This document shows positions 1 through 24,400 of a stretch of 64,000 nucleotides of DNA, piece by piece; positions within the stretch are counted from its first letter, which is position 1, and every line of letters begins with the position of its first letter. The notes below the pieces were generated by a model. The model saw only the letters and a program-made list of their open reading frames with translations. It ran no database searches and was not told where the DNA came from. The DNA comes from Trichosphaerium sp. ATCC 40318. Lineage: Eukaryota; Protista; Tubulinea. Position numbers and translations under genes: made by a program. The stretch covers positions 124,001-188,000 of the forward strand of contig JALMLS010000255.1 of assembly GCA_038496445.1 (NCBI GenBank). The letters are read 5' to 3'.

Positions 1-2378
1 CTTCATTTTTTAGCTTATTTTGAGCTTAGGTCGAGCATCAATTAAAAATAAATAACTTATCGGATTGGTATAAAGTCATTCCTAGAGATCTTAGACGATT
101 AGGTGGTACTAGCCTTTTACAGTATGTCAAAATGATTCCCCCTTTTTTTCTTTTCTCAAAAAAAGTGTAAAACGTAGCGACTTACGCAATCAACAGGCAT
201 TATGGTCAATCAGTGCATGAATTATTGAAGGACGTATATCCAGATCAAGTATGGGATATGTCTGAATACTCTAAAACTCTTACAGCAGTACCTCCAAACT
301 ACTGGAGTCGTAAAGAAAACAGGAAGAATTTTATGATTGAAGCTGAAAAACAGTTGAAAATACAGGATCTATCTGATTGGTATCGTGTTTCAGAGCATCA
401 TATAGCCATGTTAGGTGGAGGTAGTATACGTTATCACTGGCCCGAGGTTGTAAGGGAACTACATCCAGAGGTATCATGGGATATGGAGAGGTTCAAACAA
501 ACAGATAAAAAATCAACTCAAAGGTATCGTTCAGCTTTCGTTTTTTGGTTCTCGTTCTGGTTCTTTCTTATTCGAGTTTAGATGGCTTTTACTTTCTCTT
601 GAAGAAGTGTTAGATGGATATGATTTAGTAGAGGAGTATAAACTTGGAGTAGAAAAGAGTCAAGTTATAAAATCTATATCTCTTGATATTTTTATTCCAC
701 AACTCAATGTTGCTATTGAATATCAAGGTCATCAACATTATTATGATATTCATGGTACATATGGCCCAGCTTCGGTTCAAGAGACAAGAGATCTAAACAA
801 GAAACAACTTTGTAGCGAATACGGTAACAACCATACATCAACTCTGTTTTTGAAAAAAAACCCGCCCTAACCGAATATCTTTATCTTTCACGTGCTCACT
901 GCTGACATGTGATAGGTATTACAATTATTCCTATTCCTTTCTGGTGGAATCCTACTGATAAAGAAAGTCTAGCTGCTACTATAGATTACTACTTGTACGT
1001 AGCAGAATACTGTCAACAAACCAACTTGTAACTCTTTTAGACCTGATTCGAATGCGACTCGTTTTCCTTACCCAAAGAATACACCACCTCTTCTTCTCAT
1101 GCCTGATTCAGTATCTCGTAAAGGTAAGAAAATGCAGACCATTAATAAAGGTAAACCAATCTCCGTAGTGAGGAAAAAGGAGAAGATGACATTGCTTAAA
1201 CATTATGATCCAAAAAAGGATTACACCGGTTGGTATGCTTGTCAGCTATTTTGTAGACTGCTTTTTGTTGATTTGTGTACAGGATGATTTCTGAGAAGCT
1301 TGATGGTATACGTGCTTTATGGGATGGCGTTGATTCGTTATACTCAAGATCTGGAAAGCTCATACCTGCACCAACCGAGATATCTAGCCTTTTGCCAAAG
1401 AATATTTCACTTGATGGAGAGTTGTGGTATGTATTATCTTGCTTACACGTGATTTTTTATTTCTTTAAAAGTTTATTTCTTTTAGGCTTGGTCACAACAC
1501 ACGAGAGACCTTACATGGTCAGTTGTATAAGAATAAACCAGATTGGAACGGTATGTGTTCTGAAGAGCATTGGTTTTTTTTTTTTTCATTCCAAAGTTGT
1601 AATGTTTTTGCTTTGTAGGTGTCAAGTTTATGGTGTTCGATGTTGTGATACCCAAATTACCTTTCAAAGGTGTGGTTTTAAAGTATGATTTCTTTAAAAG
1701 TAACTCGAGATAGAACGCTATGAACGCTTAAAGGAAATTATTAAAGAGTTAAACTTGCCTTGGGTTCAATGTGTTCAGGAGCAATTCTGTCACTCTCGCT
1801 CGCATGTATCGCAGCACCTAAGTTCTGTGACTTCTATAGGTGGCGAAGGAATAGTATTAAGAGATCCGCAAGGGATGTACATACCAGGTCGTCATGAAGG
1901 CATTCTAAAAGTAAAAGTGAGTGAAAACTTTTTTACAGTCGTTGCTTCTTTTTCTGCTTCTGTACCTTTCTTTGCCCTCCTAACATTTGATATCTTCAAA
2001 GCCATACTACGATATGGAAGTTCGTATGCTACGACCTCACTCAAGTGGATATCTGTTATGTGAATTGTATGTCTTTCTTTTTTTAGTAAAGCACAAGAAC
2101 TACAAAGATGGTTAACTTAATGAACACATAGGCCTTCTGGAGACAACATATTTGTGCGGTGTACAAAACAAGAACAAAGGGATCCACCTGCACAAGGCAT
2201 GGTACTAACTGTAAAACACGAGGTACATACGATATTTGTCATTGTGTTTGTTACACAACATTAAAATTGTTTTTTTTTATAGGGTGTTAATAAGAATGGT
2301 AAGCCCAGATTTCCCTTCTATTTCAGTTGTAGACTTGATATGACATGGCAAGATGTTGTCAACGCTGTAAAGGATTAA
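1..2378 (+). CDS. 5'-partial multi-exon gene: helical repeats + Vsr/DUF559-like PD-(D/E)XK endonuclease + ATP-dependent DNA ligase with OB domain
   Basis: GT-AG splicing gives one frame. Repeats: 'EHQLKINNLSDWYKV..LGGTSLL' and 'EKQLKIQDLSDWYRV..LGGGSI'. Nuclease: 'LDIFIPQLNVAIEYQGHQHY...RDLNKKQLCSEYGITIIPIPFWW'. Ligase motifs: 'WMISEKLDGIRALW', 'LDGELW', 'FMVFDV', 'GGEGIVLR', 'ILKVK', 'GKPRFPFY'. Stop TAA at 2376-2378. Confidence 0.88.
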
Positions 2379-2861
2379 GATGTACATAGTGTTGTGACAA
2401 CACTTACACCAGAATAAATACTTTTTTGTACAGTAAACACTGAGTGGTAAGCAAATTGTGGTAACGATTGAAGGGTATGAAACTTCCTCTGGCGATTACA
2501 GCATATCCCCTACATGGTATAGACTTGAAGTCCTTAATATCTAGCAATGTAGGATAGAAAGAAAACGTATTTCAAGAAGATGCAGCACGTTTTCCTGTTG
2601 TTTTGTTAGACGCTAGCTGGCTGTTACGTGACTGCCAAAAAATCACTTACGATGAATACTGGAAGGTTTCAGCAACTGAGATACGGCAGCAGCCACATTT
2701 TGAACTTGCATCAATGAGCCAACTAGTTTAATATGATCAACTCTTAATACACCAGGGAGATCTTATTTTGGGAACAAGCTACCATCCTTCTTTTTGTTGA
2801 CATTTAACTAGCCTTGATCAAAATACTGTGAGTTATTAATGCGAACTGGAATTTTATGTAG

Positions 2862-3539
2862 GCATTCTTGATGGCCGTTACAAAGAATGGGACACATCAG
2901 GTAAATTGCAAGTAGGCACAACAAGAAAAAGTGACAAAATTATTGGTCGCTACAGACAATGGTTTCTAACTGGTAATTTATTTATCAACACAACCTATAA
3001 TGATGAAGGAATCAAACATGGAGAAGAAACAAAATACTACTTAAACGGTTCCCTAAAGGAGAAAAACCAACTTTGAGAATGGGAAAAAAAATGTGCCTTA
3101 TCAAAAATGGCTAACCAAATGGTACTTTGATTAACTCAAGTATGCTTAAGGAAGGTAAGCCTGTAGGCACTTCAAAAGTGAGTAAAGACGAGGGAAAGAC
3201 ATATTACATTACTAATTATGTTGATGGGAAAGAGAATGGTAAAGCGTCAACAGTTGATGATAATGGTATATCCTTTTGTCAGAATGTTTTATGAAAGATG
3301 GTGCACGATGTGGCGTTTATAAGGAGTTTTATCCTGACGGAAGTGTCAAAATGGATGTTGAATATAAAGGTGGTTTAAGACAAGGATTTGAAACACAGTA
3401 TGACGTAAAAGGGAATGTGACAAATCAAGTTGATTTTAAAGACGGTGCTTTAAAATTCAAATCTAAGTTTACTTTTACTCCATCACCAATACAAATTGAT
3501 GAAAAGAGTCAATTTAACTCAGTAGTTGAACTTAGCTAA
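2862..3539 (+). pseudogene. MORN-variant (YwqK-like) repeat protein, frameshifted
   Basis: Repeats 'GRYKEWDTSGKL', 'GRYRQWFLTGNL', 'GEETKYYLNGSL', 'GVYKEFYPDGSV', 'GFETQYDVKGNV'. The frame breaks near ~3065, ~3112 and ~3272 with no splice signals, so this is a pseudogene or sequencing error. Confidence 0.65.
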
Positions 3540-4348
3540 ACCGTTCTTTTTCTTCGAAAAAAAACCTAAAACCAAATATATCAAAACTGATGAGTTCTCA
3601 CTCTCTTGTCTTCTTTCTTTCTATCTTGACCTCTCACACTCTGGTTGTGACTGTTTATCTCTCTTTTACCACCACTGCCCTTTCCATCACGTCACCACAG
3701 AAGCTTATCTTCTTTGTAAACATAACTAATAAACCTGCACGTCTTAAAAAACAATTCTGGTCTTTTTAATATTTATCTTGGTAGTGAAAAGAAAAAAGGA
3801 TGAATTACAACGTCTTGACCACCTAGTGCTGTTGTAAGCCAGGCTTCCCACTCCTATACATCTTGTGATTTGTTGATTGTACAAAGAAACAAAATGAAAC
3901 GTGACTTAGAAATAGCAAAGAGCATCACGTGACATTGTTTCGTTTTAACTCCGAAAAAATACCAAGACTTTGTTGAATATTCTATTCTATCGGTATTGGT
4001 GATTCAACAAGTATTGTGCTTGCGTCCCCTGAAAGCCCAATGCGCGTGACCTCAAACAAAGTGCAAAGGCTATTTTGGTTCTGTGTCAAGCAGCTCAGAA
4101 CATACCGCAGTTGACAAACATTTGAAATGGGTTGGTTTCATGTGAAAGTTTTAGCTAACAATTTGGGGTTCCTTTCAGGAGTTCAATGTTGAACGCAAAA
4201 AAAAATGTACATAGGCCCTTCCATCAAACCTATAAATGCATTGATATAAGGATCCGGAATAAATTTAATGTACGAACAAAGTGCACATGTGCACTTTTTT
4301 TAAAATTCTGTATGAATTCAGGAAGACCAAAAAAACTAAAGTAACTTG

Positions 4349-5497
4349 ATGGCAACACCTCGCTTTATCTTCCTATCCCTTGTATTTTTTGGCATAGTAC
4401 ATGCGTACTGGACTCCCTTTGCTGGAAATGCAGCACCTACCCATATCACTGCAAAGAGATATGACAACATGTTCTTCTCCTCAGGTCCCTTCACAGTTGA
4501 ATCATGGATAATCCAACCTGGAGACAAATTCATACCGATGGAATGGTTGGGTCATACCCAAGTAGCCTCTTTCACTCTCTTCATCAAACCCGGCCAAAAG
4601 TGGATGCTAGCGTGGTTAGACAGGGACGGTAATTGGAGATATCAAGCAAAAGGCGGACGAACAATTGGAACCTGGTATACGTCTTCTACCGATCAATATG
4701 TTTCAGGAAGCTTCAGAGGAAGACTTGAAAAAGACTTGCTCATTTCAAACCCCGATGGTCGCTATGCTACGTTTCAACTAGACATTACAATAGACAATAA
4801 CAACGGGATGTTTAACTACATCTTCAACTTTGTAACACTCCAGTACGCTTCGAACGCAAATGTTCAAGCCACTGACAAACTCCTCGCTGGCTACTTTGAC
4901 CATACTCTAACACCAAGAAAAGAGTACGTTGTATTGATCAAGTCAACCGGGTACTACGTAATGACGTTTAACACGGTAACAAACAACTGGGATATTCTCT
5001 CGAGCTCAAGCAACGGACAGATATACTGGTGGGTTATTAATCTGTCGAATGACAAGTGCATTGTCGGTGGATTCGAAACACGATCACGTGATCTCCTACT
5101 TTGTATTAATCCAAATGGATGGCATCATCTCATGAAATTAGACCCAGCAACAAATACCTTCCAGTTCATTGAAGGCGGCTCAAACGGCAAAGTAGGCACG
5201 TGGACAATCGGTCATCACAATAGATTTCTTGCTGGAAAATTCGACTTGGTTCAACCAGTAGGCGGAATAGATCCACATCACTTGCTCGCAATTGATCCAA
5301 GTGGTAATTCCCAAACACTTAAACTAGTAAATAACCAGTGGACCCAAGTAGCAACGAATAACGGAGATGGTAAGATTGCTGGCTGGCATATCGGTTGGGG
5401 AGATCACTGTGTAAGAGTTGAATCTTATGACGATGACCGCTATAGAATACTAGCACTGAACAATGGCGGTTGGTGGAAAAGTATGCAACTGGCATAA
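4349..5497 (+). CDS. Intronless secreted beta-propeller-like protein (FG-GAP/VCBS-like repeats)
   Basis: 382-aa ORF with signal peptide (MATPRFIFLSLVFFGIVHA). Repeats of the form G-x-(I/V)-G-x-W...(A/S/V)G-x-F...LL-x-I-(N/D)-P-x-G. AATAAA follows the stop. Confidence 0.8.
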   Translation: MATPRFIFLSLVFFGIVHAYWTPFAGNAAPTHITAKRYDNMFFSSGPFTVESWIIQPGDKFIPMEWLGHTQVASFTLFIKPGQKWMLAWLDRDGNWRYQAKGGRTIGTWYTSSTDQYVSGSFRGRLEKDLLISNPDGRYATFQLDITIDNNNGMFNYIFNFVTLQYASNANVQATDKLLAGYFDHTLTPRKEYVVLIKSTGYYVMTFNTVTNNWDILSSSSNGQIYWWVINLSNDKCIVGGFETRSRDLLLCINPNGWHHLMKLDPATNTFQFIEGGSNGKVGTWTIGHHNRFLAGKFDLVQPVGGIDPHHLLAIDPSGNSQTLKLVNNQWTQVATNNGDGKIAGWHIGWGDHCVRVESYDDDRYRILALNNGGWWKSMQLA

Positions 5498-5969
5498 ATA
5501 AAACTGTTATGTTTTCCCTTAGCTTGTTTTCTGTTTTTTAACTTTGCGATGGATGTGTTTTAGTCGGTTTGTTGCTATAGGTTCGCTATCAAATGTATGG
5601 TAAATATGTTAAATAGCTCAGGGATATATGTAGTTAATGAACAGAGTTCCAGTAAACCGTCTTATTGTGTAGCAACTGTGTTGGACTTTGGCTGGAAAAA
5701 TTATTTGGACTTTGGGTGTAAAGTGCTGTAGTAATTTTTACGAACATGTTGTAGCTTCAAATCCGGTCCTTACGTATCACATACCTTCAACGTTATAATA
5801 CATTAAGCGCAATTAATTATGGAACAAAACAAGGACGTATCCAAAGCTGAAAAGCAACAAACACTGACAAACGTGATAGAACCGCAAACATTTATTCTTG
5901 CTGCACTACCAATTCTAGACTGCAATAAATAGGTATGATTTATTTTGTAAGATTATCAACTATTTAGCT

Positions 5970-8900
5970 TTATTGTATCTCGACATACTAATTTGTAAAG
6001 TCAACAAAAATGTAAATGAACTGAGGCCTTGGCGTACTTCTTTGTTTTGGGATTTGCAACACTTCTGTTTAAAAAATGGCTTCACTTTCTTGTAAAGCAA
6101 ATTACTTACAACACCAACGTTATATATTACTGTAAACATAAATAATATAGCCCCTATAATACCAAACTGTGTAAAAGGAGGTTCTTCATACTCAGTAAAT
6201 ATATCTGAGTTACTTTGTACATTGATAGTAAGCCTGTAAACAAAAAACGTAAGTTTCATAGTGAACAACATAAAGATGGACCTCCACGTGACAAAGTTCA
6301 AAACTCATCAAATTGGGAGAGGTAAAGAATAAAACAGAAAACCTTTACACTTAACGCAGTGAAGATCAGAAGGCTCAAACTTGAACCTCTTTTTCAGATT
6401 GTCCAAAAAAAAAAAAGAGGGTTACAAAAAGAAAAAAGGAATATACTTTGGTGGGGTTTCTGAATAAACGTCTGTGTCGTTGCAACATCTTTTTGCATTC
6501 CCAATCATACGTGGCTTTTTCGCTGTGATGCCAATGTATCCTTTATTGTTGTTAAATAGATGAGAGCATTGTGAAGAGTATTTTTCTTTAAACCACTTAC
6601 CGTCTATGTTTGCTCTGCCAGAAAGGTCTTTTGTGCGTCGTACAACACCTGTAGCAGTAACAGATACTTCATGACCCACTGAAGGTAAGTACTGATACTT
6701 TTGAGCAAAGATGTGAGCGGACAATGAAGTATCTAGTAAAAAGAAACTATGGTGAGACAACAAATAAGCACAGAAAAAAACAGTCGTACTGTATTTCTGA
6801 ATGGCGTTTACTTCAATTTCTATATGGCTATAGAACACAACACATCCATGGAGTTGTATATTATCAGGCGATCCATCGATAGAAGCAACAAAGGTATACG
6901 TGGATAAACTAGAAAAAGAGAGATTAGGTTATGTGAGGTTTTCTTTTTAACGTTACCTTGATGAGGTTTTATTCAAAATACTTGATGTTTCAACGTTGTC
7001 TCTTGTATGTATAACTTTGGGAATACAATCCGAAACAAATAACAAAAGGTCATACCTGCATTAGTGTTAGTGAAGATTTTCTAATCACGTGCAAAGAAAA
7101 AAAAGTTGTGGTACCATTTAACAGTAATCTCAATCTTTGCGACACTATTTTTGGCATAAGTAAGTATTCATTAACATTATAGAATTATCACGTGTTCACG
7201 TACTTTTTTAAATGGTCATAAAAGCCATCAATCCCATCATTTGAGATTAGCGCTTCAGCGTTTCTAGATGAACTTGTACGTTTAGCATTTTGAGTAATTA
7301 CAAAATGTGCTCGAGAAAAAGGTACAGGTTCATATTTAACATAAAGTTGAACCTCGGACAACGACCAAAATACAGAAACCAATCATCGCTATAGTAATCA
7401 AACCACCAACAATATCACCATGCCAACTGATATAAACAGGATCATGGTCAGCATGAAGAACCATTTGTTTGTTAATATCGATGACTTGTACAGTTTTAAC
7501 AAACCAACTGTGTTCACATCCGCAGTGTGTCAATATTACTGCTATAACACAGGCGGCAATAACACAAATACAAAGGATTATGAAAAGGCTAAAAACAAGA
7601 GGAGACTGTGGTGTTGTTATGCCAGAAAGAAACTGTTGTTGTAATGATTCAACAATAGTATCTTCAAAAGGGTAGAAAGATGATTTTGGTGCCATTGTAG
7701 ATGTATTTGTATGTGGTATAAACCGTGCTGTACCACCTCTGCATGATTGATTGTGTCGACAAGGTAAACATGAAGCTGATCCATTTTTTGGCTGAAAAGT
7801 TCCAGGACTACACAACAAGCAAATGCTAACTCCAATCTTGTTCTTATAGGTACCAGGAGGACATTGAATTTGTTTTCCGTTATCTGCATATGTAACACCC
7901 TTTGGAAGATTCAAGTCCCATGTTGTGAGCTCATATGTTATGTAATAAGGACGAGTTTGTCTATCATAAAGATACAACATGTCATCTACTGCTCTAACCA
8001 TTACAAACTGATCATTTGGTGCAAAAACAGTTGGAGAAATTGTTTTAGGTATCATATCAATAACATCTACTCTTACTATCTCTCTTAATGATTCTGGATC
8101 AGATGTCACATTTTGTATAAAAAATAGACACTCTGTATGTGGTAAAGCGTTTCCACAACTGCCTACAGACAAAGATTGATGGAAATTGAAGGAGTTATTG
8201 TTAGGACGATATAAGTCATATCCATTAGTTATTACGGGTATTACTTGTGCATAGTTGCCAGATATTACTAGCCCATTTTGGTTCCTGAAAAAGCTCCATT
8301 GTCCATTAAAGTGATCACTTGTAATAAAAACTGCTCCAAGATTAGTTCTACCATTGACCAAAGTTACACCATATGATGCATCATTGGCAGTAATGTTGCT
8401 ATTGTATACTTCATTCTCAAAACATATCTAACATGTGACTTAGTAATTAGACGAATTTGACAAGTGATAACATACAGATGCTAAGTGACCATTTGTCATC
8501 GCTGTTAAGGGGGGTCCACTGGGTACAGTGCTGTCGTATGCAAAAAAAGAGTATTCTTTCGGAGATAGTGTCATGTTGTATGTAAGAACACCGTTTGTTG
8601 TCGTAGCTATAAGAAAATACCTATTGCTTATAACAACACCATTGAAATGTCCTTTTCTTTCCTAAAAAAAAAACCAACATCAGTACCAAACAAACAACCT
8701 TGTTGTGTATCAATGACACGATTTTAAAAAAAAACCAAAAAAACTATGATATTGTGTACTTGATCTATGGTTAAAAATGATGTCTTATTAGTTTTCCAGT
8801 TATACAATGAAATTGTTGAATTATCTGTAATCATTGCAGATAATGAACCGCTTGCTGATATGACACGATACTCTGGTATTGGAGTATAGTCATGTGTTGC

Positions 8901-21443: not shown

Positions 21444-24400
21444 CTAAATTACAAGGGTACTCTTTGCTATCAAGTCTGTTACGATTGCATCCAGCTTTTT
21501 CTCTATGCGAAGCAAATTTTTCAGCGTCAATTCTTTTGTTACAGCCCTTGAGGAAGTTAAAAACGAAAGCACTACTAAAAGTAAAAATAAAAAATATGTA
21601 CCTTTGTGCTTTCTTTGCTAGTAGGCTCCACATATCCTCAAACTGCGTAAAATGCTTTTTCAAATATGCAATCACAAACAGAGTTGTTAATAAATGCACA
21701 TGAACAACATCAATCCTTGCAGAATTAAGTCCTACCGTCAATCTCTTTTTGTCAAGTTTAAGCAGTGTTTCGAATTCTTTGCTAACAACAAAAAACCCTA
21801 GGTACCCTTTGTAAGAACAAGATGACATTACAGTTCTCTACCTGACGCGTTTTGAAGGTTGCATATAGCACTGACTAACTCAAGTCGTGTTGTAGGGGTA
21901 GGAGTATTTGCAATGGAGCTACGACTGAAAGAACTAGAGCTAGGTGAAGAGCTTTGTTGGCTGCCAACTGGAGATGGATTCCAAAACCATGACACTACAC
22001 GCGATAGTATACCTCTTCTCTGGTACTCATGAGCTGCTTTTAACTCCGTAACAGCACTCGCAACTTTACAGTTTGAGCAATCAATATCAGCTTCTATTCT
22101 ATCTATCTGTGATCCTTGCGCAACTACCACACAATTGATCTAGTACAGGTTACAAAAAACACTTTTTTTTTTTTTGTTTGTGTTCCAGTACGTCGTTAAA
22201 GATTTCGTTTATCTCCTTTACTTGCATTTCTATATTGGCAATGACTATGTTTCGTTGCTTGATTGTATCTTCTGAATTAGAATAAACGTCTTGTTGTGAA
22301 ACACCCTTTTTTGTAATTTCGTTAGTTTCAAAGAAGGAACTATTGTCAGGCATTTTCGAAACGTAATATCTACACAAGTACCTCTGTTATGGTCTTCATT
22401 TCTGCTTGGGCCTTTACTTGTTCTCTTTTCTCTATTACAACAAGTGAAGTACTTTTTGTTACTAAGTTCCATCTAGAAATCGGTTAAAAACATCCAAACT
22501 ATCATGTGATTTTAAAAGAAAAAACGTGCTTTTTAGCAAGCTCGATTACAACATCCTCGTCTTCTGTTTTGTTTATATATTGAATAGCTGATAACCTATG
22601 TATACTAGATCCTTTAATTGTAACATTATCTAATGCCTAGAGACAACAGAAAGTTAAAACAACGAGAAATGTGTTAAGTGAAATAACATCAAACTTGCCT
22701 TAACTTCAAATCTCCATGGCTTGTTTGCAACTGTTGCCGTTATCTTAATACTTTGATTGTTTTCACCTTCTTTTATAGTGTTATAGGATACTATACGCTC
22801 TCCATGGAATAATACTGGATACAACTGTTTCTTCCCACCCCAGTTAATCATGACATCTTTGAGTGTTGGTTTAAGTGCATCGCTCATTTGTCTCATAACT
22901 TTTGAACTTAAATTCATGTCATTCTTTGCTAATTCTACTCTTCCTCTTCCAATACTACCCATTTTCTTGAGTAAATCAACACTCGCTTCTGCGCCAATAC
23001 CAAACGGAAAAACACGTGTTGACGTTCCGATATTTGACTTCAAAGTGGAAATAATCTGAGAACGAAAAAAAAAGAATTAAAACTAGTTCACTTGAAACGA
23101 AAGAAAAGCCATCCACGTGACTTTGTAATATTTGAACGTACTTCTTTTTCATTTGAATCCTCTCCATCAGTCAAGAAAAAAATTTGTCTAGGAACACTAG
23201 GATCTGACTTTTGTTTCAAAATGTGGTTAAGTGGTTTTAGAATATCAGTCCCACCAAAACTCTATTGACGCACTTGAGTACTGAATAATCAAAATAAAAA
23301 GACACTTACGGCATTCATTGATTCCACGTGATCTTTAGCTTTTTTAAAGCTGTCTTCTGAATAAGGAACACTCGAGTTAAATAATGAACTAAAGTCTGTG
23401 CCGAACGAGACAATATTGAATAATGCTGTTTCTGGAAGTGCACGTAGAAATAATTGTAGAGCACATTTTGCGCTTTTCATCCTCGATCCAGACATCGAAC
23501 CGCTCCTATAAGAAACGAAAAAAATTAAATATAAGCTTATGAGGACATCAAACAAAAAGTAAACTAAAAAAAAAGTGATTTGTCTTAAATCGTCGTTTCT
23601 CGTTTCTTTGAAAACCGCTGATTGAGGGTACCTGTCTACAACAAATATGATCTCACATGTATCTGCTATTTCAGTGTCTTCAATATGAGGGTAGAAAGAA
23701 AGCATAGCTACACGATTCTTATCTATAGGTGACTCTTCAAAAACAAGAGAAGGCTCATGCATTTTTTCTGTTCGAAAGAAAATATTCAACTGTCTATTGT
23801 GAAGGTCTTGTCCATTTAAATGTAACGTTTTCTAAAGAACTCAAGTATCAGCATGTCATGACTACCAGATATTACGTACTTTATCGTTTTGGATATCAAG
23901 TTTATCATGAGAGTTGCTTTCAATAGCGATAATTGGATGTGAAGTAGTAAAGGTTACTGTGACATTTGATTCTTTTGTGGATGGAATCCTTGACGTTATT
24001 GGTAAAATAAACTCAACCCAGTTAGAAGCAGATAATAGTTCTTGAACATAAACAATCTTAAGGAGAACCCAAGTAAGTACAAACATCACAACATAGAAAA
24101 AAAAAAAACACAACGAAAAACTTTACACTTACAGTCACTTCACACTTATCCTTTGGTTGCAAATTACCGACATTTAACCTCATTCCTGTATCCGATATTT
24201 TTTCAGCAAGATAAGCACTATTTCCGCTAGCGATAGCATCATCATAATCTACAATAAAATCACGTGATCAACTTTTTTTTTTTCATAAAACAATAAAGAT
24301 GCCTTTGCAACAATAGTACTGTTATTTAGAGTTTACCTTCAGCAGCTTCATTTTTTTCCTTGCAAACACCAATAAAAGTTTTTCCATCTCGCTTAACCTC

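Follow-up and report, generated by a model that had tools for sequence, protein, structure and literature searches.

A predicted DWY-repeat, Vsr-like nuclease and Lig E-type ligase fusion protein in Trichosphaerium sp. ATCC 40318

Closest described systems

Among DNA ligases, Lig E is an enigmatic enzyme which in bacteria is located in the periplasm. The bacterial form is minimal, carrying an N-terminal periplasmic signal and a nucleotidyltransferase plus OB_2 core with motifs I-VI (PDB 4d05, 6gdr and 8u6x; NCBIfam PRK09125), and Lig E enzymes are able to seal nicks on their own (PMC7470946). Ligases of this type are already known in eukaryotes as well: the enzymes of bdelloid rotifers and Mortierella possess a Lig E core, encoded in the nuclear genome, to which PBZ zinc fingers and PST repeats have been added, and they act in the nucleus (Nicolas et al. 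2023, PMC10665377). The gene described here combines a ligase of this kind with a Vsr-like nuclease and an array of helical repeats, termed DWY repeats, in one predicted polypeptide. It was found at positions 30-2378 (+) of the window, i.e. the complete 64,000-nucleotide stretch of Trichosphaerium sp. ATCC 40318 contig JALMLS010000255.1 (positions 124,001 to 188,000, forward strand) that was analysed. Compared to bacterial Lig E, which is the best sequence match for its ligase exons, the protein has at least 295 amino acids (aa) of repeats, nuclease and linker ahead of the ligase, and the gene is eukaryotic and contains introns; a signal peptide is lacking, and the OB hairpin GKGKYxG is deleted. 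Compared to the rotifer and Mortierella enzymes, the additions are a nuclease and DWY repeats instead of PBZ fingers and PST repeats. PBZ is missing in the window protein because the latter ends directly past the OB domain. A bdelloid-rotifer origin was rejected, given the lack of PBZ and the amoebozoan relatives.

For the region preceding the ligase, other systems serve as reference. With Vsr, the homing endonuclease I-Bth0305I, DUF559 and DUF2726 proteins it shares, by motif, a conserved Asp, His, Asp pattern and, in case of Vsr, I-Bth0305I and DUF559, also the fold. For Vsr-like homing endonucleases an E-D-x-H-D composite set has been described, and I-Bth0305I likewise places an N-terminal binding region before a C-terminal Vsr-like domain (PMC3239194). 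In contrast to this group, the N-terminal module of the window protein consists of DWY repeats of 72-76 aa and not of NUMOD or helix-turn-helix elements, and it is a eukaryotic protein with a fused ligase. A second group, the RAP proteins (FASTKD1-5, OPR-RAP, HPR-RAP), resembles the family in that presequences and helical repeats precede a Vsr-like domain at the C-terminus, in its large sets of paralogues and in structural matches. The DWY unit, however, comprises about 74 aa in five helices rather than 37-38 aa, the Vsr-type histidine is kept and the Pfam RAP model is barely matched. According to a survey of RAP proteins, the domain is undetectable in Amoebozoa, and a RAP protein fused to a ligase was encountered neither in this survey (PMC8190603) nor in literature searches, which likewise turned up no account of a fusion of the present kind involving Lig E or a RAP-like protein. 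Finally, bacterial Lig D (phosphoesterase, primase-polymerase and ligase) combines end- or nick-processing with an ATP-dependent ligase in one polypeptide (PMC7470946), but it differs in ligase subfamily, in nuclease fold and in pathway, Lig D acting in Ku-dependent end joining, so that the likeness is an analogy only.

Gene model and domains of the encoded protein

Three-frame translation of window positions 1-2700 revealed coding segments which change frame at GT...AG boundaries, resulting in a splice model of 12 exons and 11 introns. All 11 introns are of the GT-AG type, 44-92 nucleotides long and 22-39% in G+C, and the spliced frame is open for 1647 nucleotides, corresponding to 548 aa plus a TAA stop. 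The individual features are the following:

1-29 (+): 3' tail of a preceding intron, rich in pyrimidines and closing with the acceptor AG (28-29); two stops (21-23 and 27-29) interrupt frame 3, which opens at 30
30-121 (+): exon a, central part of DWY repeat A (…QLKINNLSDWYKV…LGGTSLLQ), from the repeat hidden Markov model (HMM)
197-523 (+): exon b, remainder of repeat A (to about 275), entire repeat B (288-500) and start of the nuclease (504-523)
582-823 (+): exon c, nuclease core
631-633, 685-687, 718-720, 736-738, 790-792 and 799-801 (+): exon c codons of the invariant positions E157, D175, E186, H192, D210 and K213, respectively; exon c also encodes invariant G189
916-994 (+): exon d, final nuclease strand and helix (ITIIPIPFWW…ESLAATI), including invariant P228
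995-1040 (+): intron between nuclease and linker, 46 nucleotides; if retained, stop at 1029-1031 (open reading frame 909..1031)
1041-1232 (+): exon e, basic linker followed by the start of the ligase nucleotidyltransferase domain (…LLKHYDPKKDYTGW)
1283-1426 (+): exon f, ligase motifs I (SEKLDG, catalytic Lys codon 1296-1298), Ia (SRSG) and III (LDGELW)
1486-1550 (+): exon g, ligase stretch from motif III to motif IIIa
1619-1669 (+): exon h, motif IIIa (FMVFDVV)
1714-1916 (+): exon i, motifs IV (GGEGIVLR) and V (ILKVK); the nucleotidyltransferase domain ends here
2002-2066 (+): exon j, initial strands of the OB domain
2132-2222 (+): exon k, OB domain, in which the bacterial Lig E hairpin segment GKGKYxG is missing
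2283-2378 (+): exon l, motif VI (KPRFPFYF…R.D), C-terminus and TAA (2376-2378)
2413-2418 (+): AATAAA, a possible polyadenylation signal read from the sequence, 35 nucleotides past the stop

As positions 1-29 form the tail of a further intron, the 5' exons of the gene lie upstream of the window. Every splice junction rebuilds a motif which is conserved in homologues, and in alignments with homologous proteins no insertion or deletion is needed. This applies to the repeat junction (GG..LLQ/HY, the slash marking the splice site), to the nuclease junctions (KKSTQR/WLL and CSEYG/ITIIP) and to the ligase junctions, which include DYTGW/MISEKLDG, LDGELW/LGH, PFK/ERYERL and KVK/PYYD. The gene model occurs once within the window. 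The original prediction had been that of a single spliced frame with at least two helical repeats, a nuclease and a ligase, and splice model, repeat HMM and alignments recovered all four elements where it had placed them. That they belong to a single polypeptide is further supported by uninterrupted homologous open reading frames (ORFs) and by transcriptome ORFs from other species. With high confidence, the locus is a real, intron-rich eukaryotic gene encoding one protein of repeat, nuclease and ligase architecture. Retention of intron 995-1040 would give a nuclease-only protein that ends like the usual C-terminus of the family, whose members typically stop soon past this helix, and an in-frame ATG at 1099 might serve as start of a ligase-only product; such alternative isoforms are possible.

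The nuclease comprises aa 134-249 of the window protein and keeps all nine residues that are invariant in an alignment of 46 family sequences (Q139, E157, D175, E186, G189, H192, D210, K213 and P228). The motif LDIFIP...IEYQGHQH, quoted in the original prediction, is present. By motif pattern, the invariant E, D, (E), H and D fit the EDxHD signature, and mapping by pattern likewise indicates that the Vsr-type histidine is retained, at the position of which inactive FASTKD4 has an Asn (PMC11879112). While 572 library proteins were returned at E <= 1e-3 when the 80-aa nuclease exon was searched exhaustively, assignment to known families by sequence was less straightforward. In single-exon Pfam and NCBIfam scans the nuclease exons of the window gave no match, and neither the nuclease exon nor the 46-sequence profile had a convincing match in a PDB sequence search. 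Vsr (PF03852) and DUF559 (PF04480) were listed for no family member in Pfam scans, DUF2726 was matched weakly by 17 of the 46 members, with two homologues (P0052 and P0014) passing its Pfam cut-off, and RAP (PF08373) by four members only (best E 0.061).

Because sequence profiles were weak and PDB sequence searches unconvincing, the fold was assigned via predicted structure. Both AlphaFold models used for this purpose represent homologues rather than the window protein itself, the nuclease domain of which is 33-41% identical to them. The model of P0055:147-263 (predicted local distance difference test score, pLDDT, 91) displays an alpha-beta-beta-beta-alpha-beta core; the other one, P0062:161-428, covers two repeats plus nuclease (pLDDT 90.9) and was compared structurally with 48,161 PDB chains. 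Here, matches were obtained to Vsr bound to DNA (1cw0, Z 10.6), homing endonuclease I-Bth0305I (3r3p, Z 10.6), a DUF559 protein (3hrl, Z 9.8), a Toxoplasma mitoribosomal RAP protein (9g6k_Li, Z 9.6) and the RAP domain of FASTKD4 (9gek, Z 9.5). Foldseek, applied to the homologue models, agreed with a Vsr-like fold at probabilities of 0.93-1.0. On the strength of these models, the nuclease is placed in the Vsr/DUF559/DUF2726/RAP branch of the PD-(D/E)XK fold, and its original designation as a Vsr/DUF559-type PD-(D/E)XK enzyme holds, the structural comparison having been made on a homologue's model.

Ahead of the nuclease, the window protein contains at least two DWY repeats, identified with the family repeat HMM. 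Repeat A (model aa 1-57, 5e-17) is partial, its start lying upstream of the window, while repeat B spans model aa 62-132 (3e-23). The consensus from 720 copies reads approximately GYW..EN...FL...KLNL...EDW..I...QI...GG..LL..Y....LL...YPE..W.F, and family proteins carry 1-11 copies with a period of 72-76 aa. No Pfam or NCBIfam match to the repeats was obtained in single-exon scans of the window, and the structural comparison with PDB chains likewise gave none for them. A relation to the five-helix SAM or (HhH)2 domains was considered and is not claimed, only weak Pfam noise being behind that impression. Two bacterial AFDB proteins, A0A2E3GYQ3 and M5RIS0, align structurally to the repeat region alone (query 1-148 and 1-172, respectively; 23-24% identity). 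Given these matches between predicted structures, the DWY repeat may also occur outside eukaryotes and their viruses.

Nuclease and ligase are connected by a linker of 45 aa (aa 251-295) with a net charge of +10. The ligase itself (aa 296-548) has motifs I (SEKLDG), Ia, III, IIIa, IV, V and VI all intact; they align with bacterial Lig E, including PRFP of motif VI, and no frame problem arises at any exon junction. Two ligase exons searched alone had Lig E structures (4d05, 6gdr and 8u6x) as best PDB matches: exon f matched 4d05 (5.6e-5) and 6gdr (6.7e-5), exon i 8u6x, 6gdr and 4d05. PRK09125 was the best NCBIfam model for the ligase exons (3.3e-12 for exon f, 5.1e-12 for exon i), ahead by 19-33 bits, and exon i alone reached 30.6 bits with Pfam PF01068 (cut-off 26.2). 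Regarding the C-terminal part, the OB exons of the window that were scanned are too short to score, and with OB_2 (PF14743) homologues P0055 and P0194 scored 20-22 bits, below the cut-off of 28. Hairpin GKGKYxG is absent not only from the window ligase but also from P0055 and P0302, the two other fused members in this alignment. By sequence, the ligase is a minimal bacterial-type Lig E and not a LIG1/3/4 enzyme, to which the Lig E structures, PRK09125 and the motif alignment all testify; the original prediction had likened it to minimal bacterial or viral ATP ligases rather than to LIG1/3/4.

Relatives, viral kin and neighbouring genes

About 27 database protein clusters share the architecture of repeats, nuclease and ligase, further fused relatives having been found with a profile of fused members beyond the nuclease-exon search. 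From the repeats to the ligase C-terminus, the window protein aligns with P0302 (E 9e-102), P0194 (4e-87) and P0055 (2e-83); such an end-to-end alignment of a spliced model with independent proteins is far beyond chance. P0055 (588 aa) and P0153 (788 aa) are uninterrupted genomic ORFs; the eukaryotic contigs on which they lie, of 838 kb and 198 kb, respectively, differ in coverage and carry neighbours such as RasGAP, TCP-1 and RGS. P0194 is a complete, fused Trinity ORF from Cavostelium apophysatum, and fused transcriptome ORFs were also obtained from Arcella intermedia, Amoeba proteus and MMETSP entries. Since relatives carry the fusion in uninterrupted and transcriptome ORFs, it is not an artefact of the gene model. 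It is conserved at less than 40% identity among distant amoebozoans, and the core six nuclease residues (D, E, G, H, D, K) are kept in all ten fused proteins aligned. Based on these sequences, the fusion family is conserved in amoebozoans (Arcella, Amoeba, Cavostelium) and other protists.

In a tree of the ligase domain, which included neither a Lig1/3/4 outgroup nor a rotifer sequence, the window ligase groups with Lig E sequences, and 16 fused rows and five others form one side of a branch with a support of 99 in the Shimodaira-Hasegawa-like approximate likelihood ratio test (SH-aLRT). On the opposite side are 82 Lig E rows from bacteria, fungi and an oomycete, among them the fungal and oomycete sequences P0186, P0219 and P0188. 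Four of the five other rows in the fused clade represent two distinct sequences, P0201 and P0305, which consist of a mitochondrion-like presequence, a single DWY repeat and the ligase, with no nuclease domain. Three fused lineages, P0062, P0052 and P0040, have lost the lysine of the ligase KxDG motif (SRHLAG, SEYREG and RQRL-G, respectively) and form long branches in the ligase tree, but retain all nuclease invariants. The Physarum ligase row, a long branch as well, falls outside the fused clade. The corresponding Physarum polycephalum transcript (P0192, 881 aa) has an ORF which opens in the last nuclease strand and continues with a His-rich linker, a divergent ligase and five DWY repeats, reflecting either an altered domain order or read-through of two adjacent genes. 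In the tree of the nuclease domain (173 rows, 115 columns) the fused label needs 13 changes, and many "nuclease-only" rows are truncated contigs; this tree speaks neither for nor against the fusion having arisen once. An independent nuclease-ligase fusion was noticed in P0245 (525 aa, on a 42.7 kb ENA contig), in which a PDDEXK_1 (RecB/Cas4-like) domain is followed by a Lig E-related ATP-dependent ligase.

Most relatives, however, consist of repeats and a C-terminal nuclease without ligase and constitute a large paralogous family. In the ESM Atlas the family is found mainly in Tubulinea, similar repeat plus nuclease proteins occur in Nucleocytoviricota, and looser kin are phage modular nucleases such as DUF723, NUMOD and DUF559; AFDB cluster representatives of the family are automatically named 'RAP domain-containing protein'. 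Among 69 members with a Met start and an extension before the first repeat, 32 have an acid-free, basic presequence (e.g. MLRLYPPIIQKICLASF…), including the fused or ligase-bearing members P0055, P0198, P0201, P0302 and P0305. From these extensions, family members are probably sent to mitochondria.

The nuclease core is encoded at more than 417 viral loci. A viral origin of the entire module was rejected, as the best 80 of these loci contained neither DWY repeats nor a fused ligase. In only one of the 80 (L064) does a ligase ORF lie nearby, as a separate gene. At positions 3845-6913 of this phage-like contig, a 131-aa DUF2726-like nuclease of the present type, a dUTPase, an ATP-dependent DNA ligase and T5orf172 follow each other in that order, and the nuclease looks like a free-standing homing-endonuclease-type gene amid DNA-metabolism genes.

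The surroundings of the gene in the window are as follows:

2880-3540 (+): downstream neighbour, short ORFs in different frames with weak MORN_2 matches, probably an intron-split MORN-repeat gene
7336-8361 (-): long exon with Ephrin-receptor-like/TNFR cysteine-rich repeats
23289-23789 (-): long exon with a VWA_3 domain
58006-59157 (+): long exon with leucine-rich repeats
59560-60273 (-): long exon of an Aa_trans amino-acid transporter

The four long exons belong to ordinary eukaryotic genes. No Rfam match was found anywhere in the 64-kb window.

Possible function and significance

Taken as a whole, the protein is tentatively read as an organellar (mitochondrial) DNA nick-and-seal enzyme, a reading to which slightly less than an even chance is given. 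The protein would be imported into mitochondria, where the DWY repeats would hold it on organellar nucleic acid and the nuclease would nick or cut DNA, leaving 5'-phosphate and 3'-OH. Such ends, as left by Vsr and other PD-(D/E)XK enzymes, can be sealed by a ligase. Other factors such as a polymerase might then process the nick before the tethered ligase reseals it, and a single polypeptide would thereby both open and complete a nick-initiated reaction of patch repair or recombination on mitochondrial DNA. The cut-and-seal activity with DNA-recognising repeats that the original prediction had proposed is a reasonable hypothesis, and the nearest structural kin of repeat plus nuclease outside eukaryotes, giant-virus and phage modular nucleases, are counted as a DNA context.

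Several observations weigh against this reading. Regarding localisation, the presequences were seen in relatives by means of a crude filter with neither predictor nor control set, the N-terminus of the window protein is encoded upstream of the window, and a nuclear localisation signal would be an equally plausible role for the basic linker. Regarding DNA as substrate, neither the repeat region nor the nuclease region is basic (net charge -1 and -8, respectively), no PDB structural match of the repeats that would indicate DNA binding was found among the chains compared, and although D175, E186, H192 and D210 do not vary within the family, they were matched to Vsr D51 and H69 by motif and not by superposition. 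In addition, no transcripts of the gene were recovered: the stretch was absent from all 20 runs listed for the species, and no RNA contig for it came from the four largest of these. Nor does every fused protein require sealing, as the three fused lineages without ligase lysine indicate, and the product of the nuclease is the substrate of the ligase, which amounts to a futile cycle unless other steps intervene. Finally, a large presequence-bearing paralogue family looks more like the organellar RNA-binding families (PPR, OPR, HPR-RAP), and the best PDB match of the two-repeat plus nuclease model is the T. gondii mitoribosome RAP protein (E 2.6e-4). The family thus resembles helical-repeat RAP proteins acting on organellar RNA, which makes RNA a serious alternative substrate.

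The main rival is an organellar RNA-processing factor, in which DWY repeats and Vsr-like domain would be the amoebozoan counterpart of FASTKD, OPR-RAP and HPR-RAP proteins, binding or cleaving mitochondrial transcripts, while the ligase joins or holds RNA or an RNA-DNA hybrid. Besides the T. gondii match, the FASTKD4 FAST1-FAST2-RAP module is among the matches of the same model (FASTKD4 RAP, Z 9.5), the automatic AFDB names, the 1-11 repeats and the mitochondrial-looking presequences of the paralogues point in the same direction, and FASTKD5 is an active RNA endonuclease (PMC12242768). Nonetheless, an RNA role is considered unlikely: the fusion partner is a Lig E DNA ligase whose OB domain is probably of the DNA-type OB_2 kind, histidine and acidic residues of Vsr type are kept throughout the family alignment, unlike in FASTKD4, Pfam RAP is matched by just four of the 46 members (E >= 0.06) compared to 17 for DUF2726, and the closest non-eukaryotic kin are viral DNA nucleases. 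It is likewise improbable that the ligase alone is the working part, i.e. an organellar or nuclear replication or repair ligase to which the DWY-nuclease region contributes passive targeting or anchoring but no cleavage. The intact ligase motifs would fit, as would P0201 and P0305, which combine presequence, one DWY repeat and ligase, and a precedent may be seen in Lig K, the Lig K of kinetoplastids being mitochondrial. Lig K has been treated as a relative of Lig E, and eukaryotic Lig E functions in DNA repair (PMC10665377). The nine nuclease invariants of the window protein and the core six of all ten fused proteins aligned speak against a passive role, however, and lineages without the ligase lysine retain the nuclease invariants, an argument for selection acting on the nuclease site itself.

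A selfish or defence element, namely a domesticated homing-endonuclease-like gene from giant viruses or phages with a ligase that limits self-damage, appears very unlikely. The nuclease fold does equal that of homing endonuclease I-Bth0305I, Nucleocytoviricota clusters contain repeats plus nuclease, the nuclease core is present at hundreds of viral loci, and phage-like L064 has a stand-alone nuclease of this type amid DNA-metabolism genes. Yet 11 spliceosomal introns, host-like composition, ordinary cellular neighbours and the mitochondrion-like presequences in the family speak against it, the fusion is conserved in distant amoebozoans, and among the 80 best viral loci DWY repeats are absent and the only nearby ligase is the separate ORF of L064. 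Least probable, with hardly any weight assigned to it, is an artefact or dead gene, in which the splice model would have joined separate nuclease and ligase genes or an unexpressed pseudogene would be at hand. Although no RNA contigs were obtained for the stretch, a retained intron 995-1040 gives a stop and the ATG at 1099 could start a ligase-only product, 12 open exons with canonical sites, conserved motifs rebuilt at each junction, fully intact catalytic residues and homologues with the same fusion in uninterrupted ORFs stand against it. As an extension of the nick-and-seal reading, and by analogy with TALE and PPR proteins, the DWY array might provide modular one-repeat-per-site recognition, turning the protein into a sequence-guided single-chain nick-and-seal enzyme for mitochondrial genomes; this is thought to be quite unlikely.

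What is new is the domain architecture, assembled from known parts (Lig E, Vsr-like nuclease) and an uncharacterised repeat, whereas no new kind of mechanism has been shown. In eukaryotes, the Lig E characterised to date is a radiation-tolerance factor which was acquired horizontally and has PBZ fingers; here, the Lig E core is joined to a Vsr-type nuclease, apparently an active one, and to an array of repeats in a family across amoebozoan lineages. If the nick-and-seal reading is true, it would provide a candidate mitochondrial DNA ligase and repair enzyme for a major eukaryotic group, as well as a compact natural enzyme pairing DNA nicking with sealing that is open to ordinary biochemistry, and the "missing" RAP-like proteins of Amoebozoa would exist in divergent form. 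Should the modular-array extension be true as well, the family would constitute a novel type of machine for editing or repairing organellar DNA and might serve as scaffold for programmable nickase-ligases.

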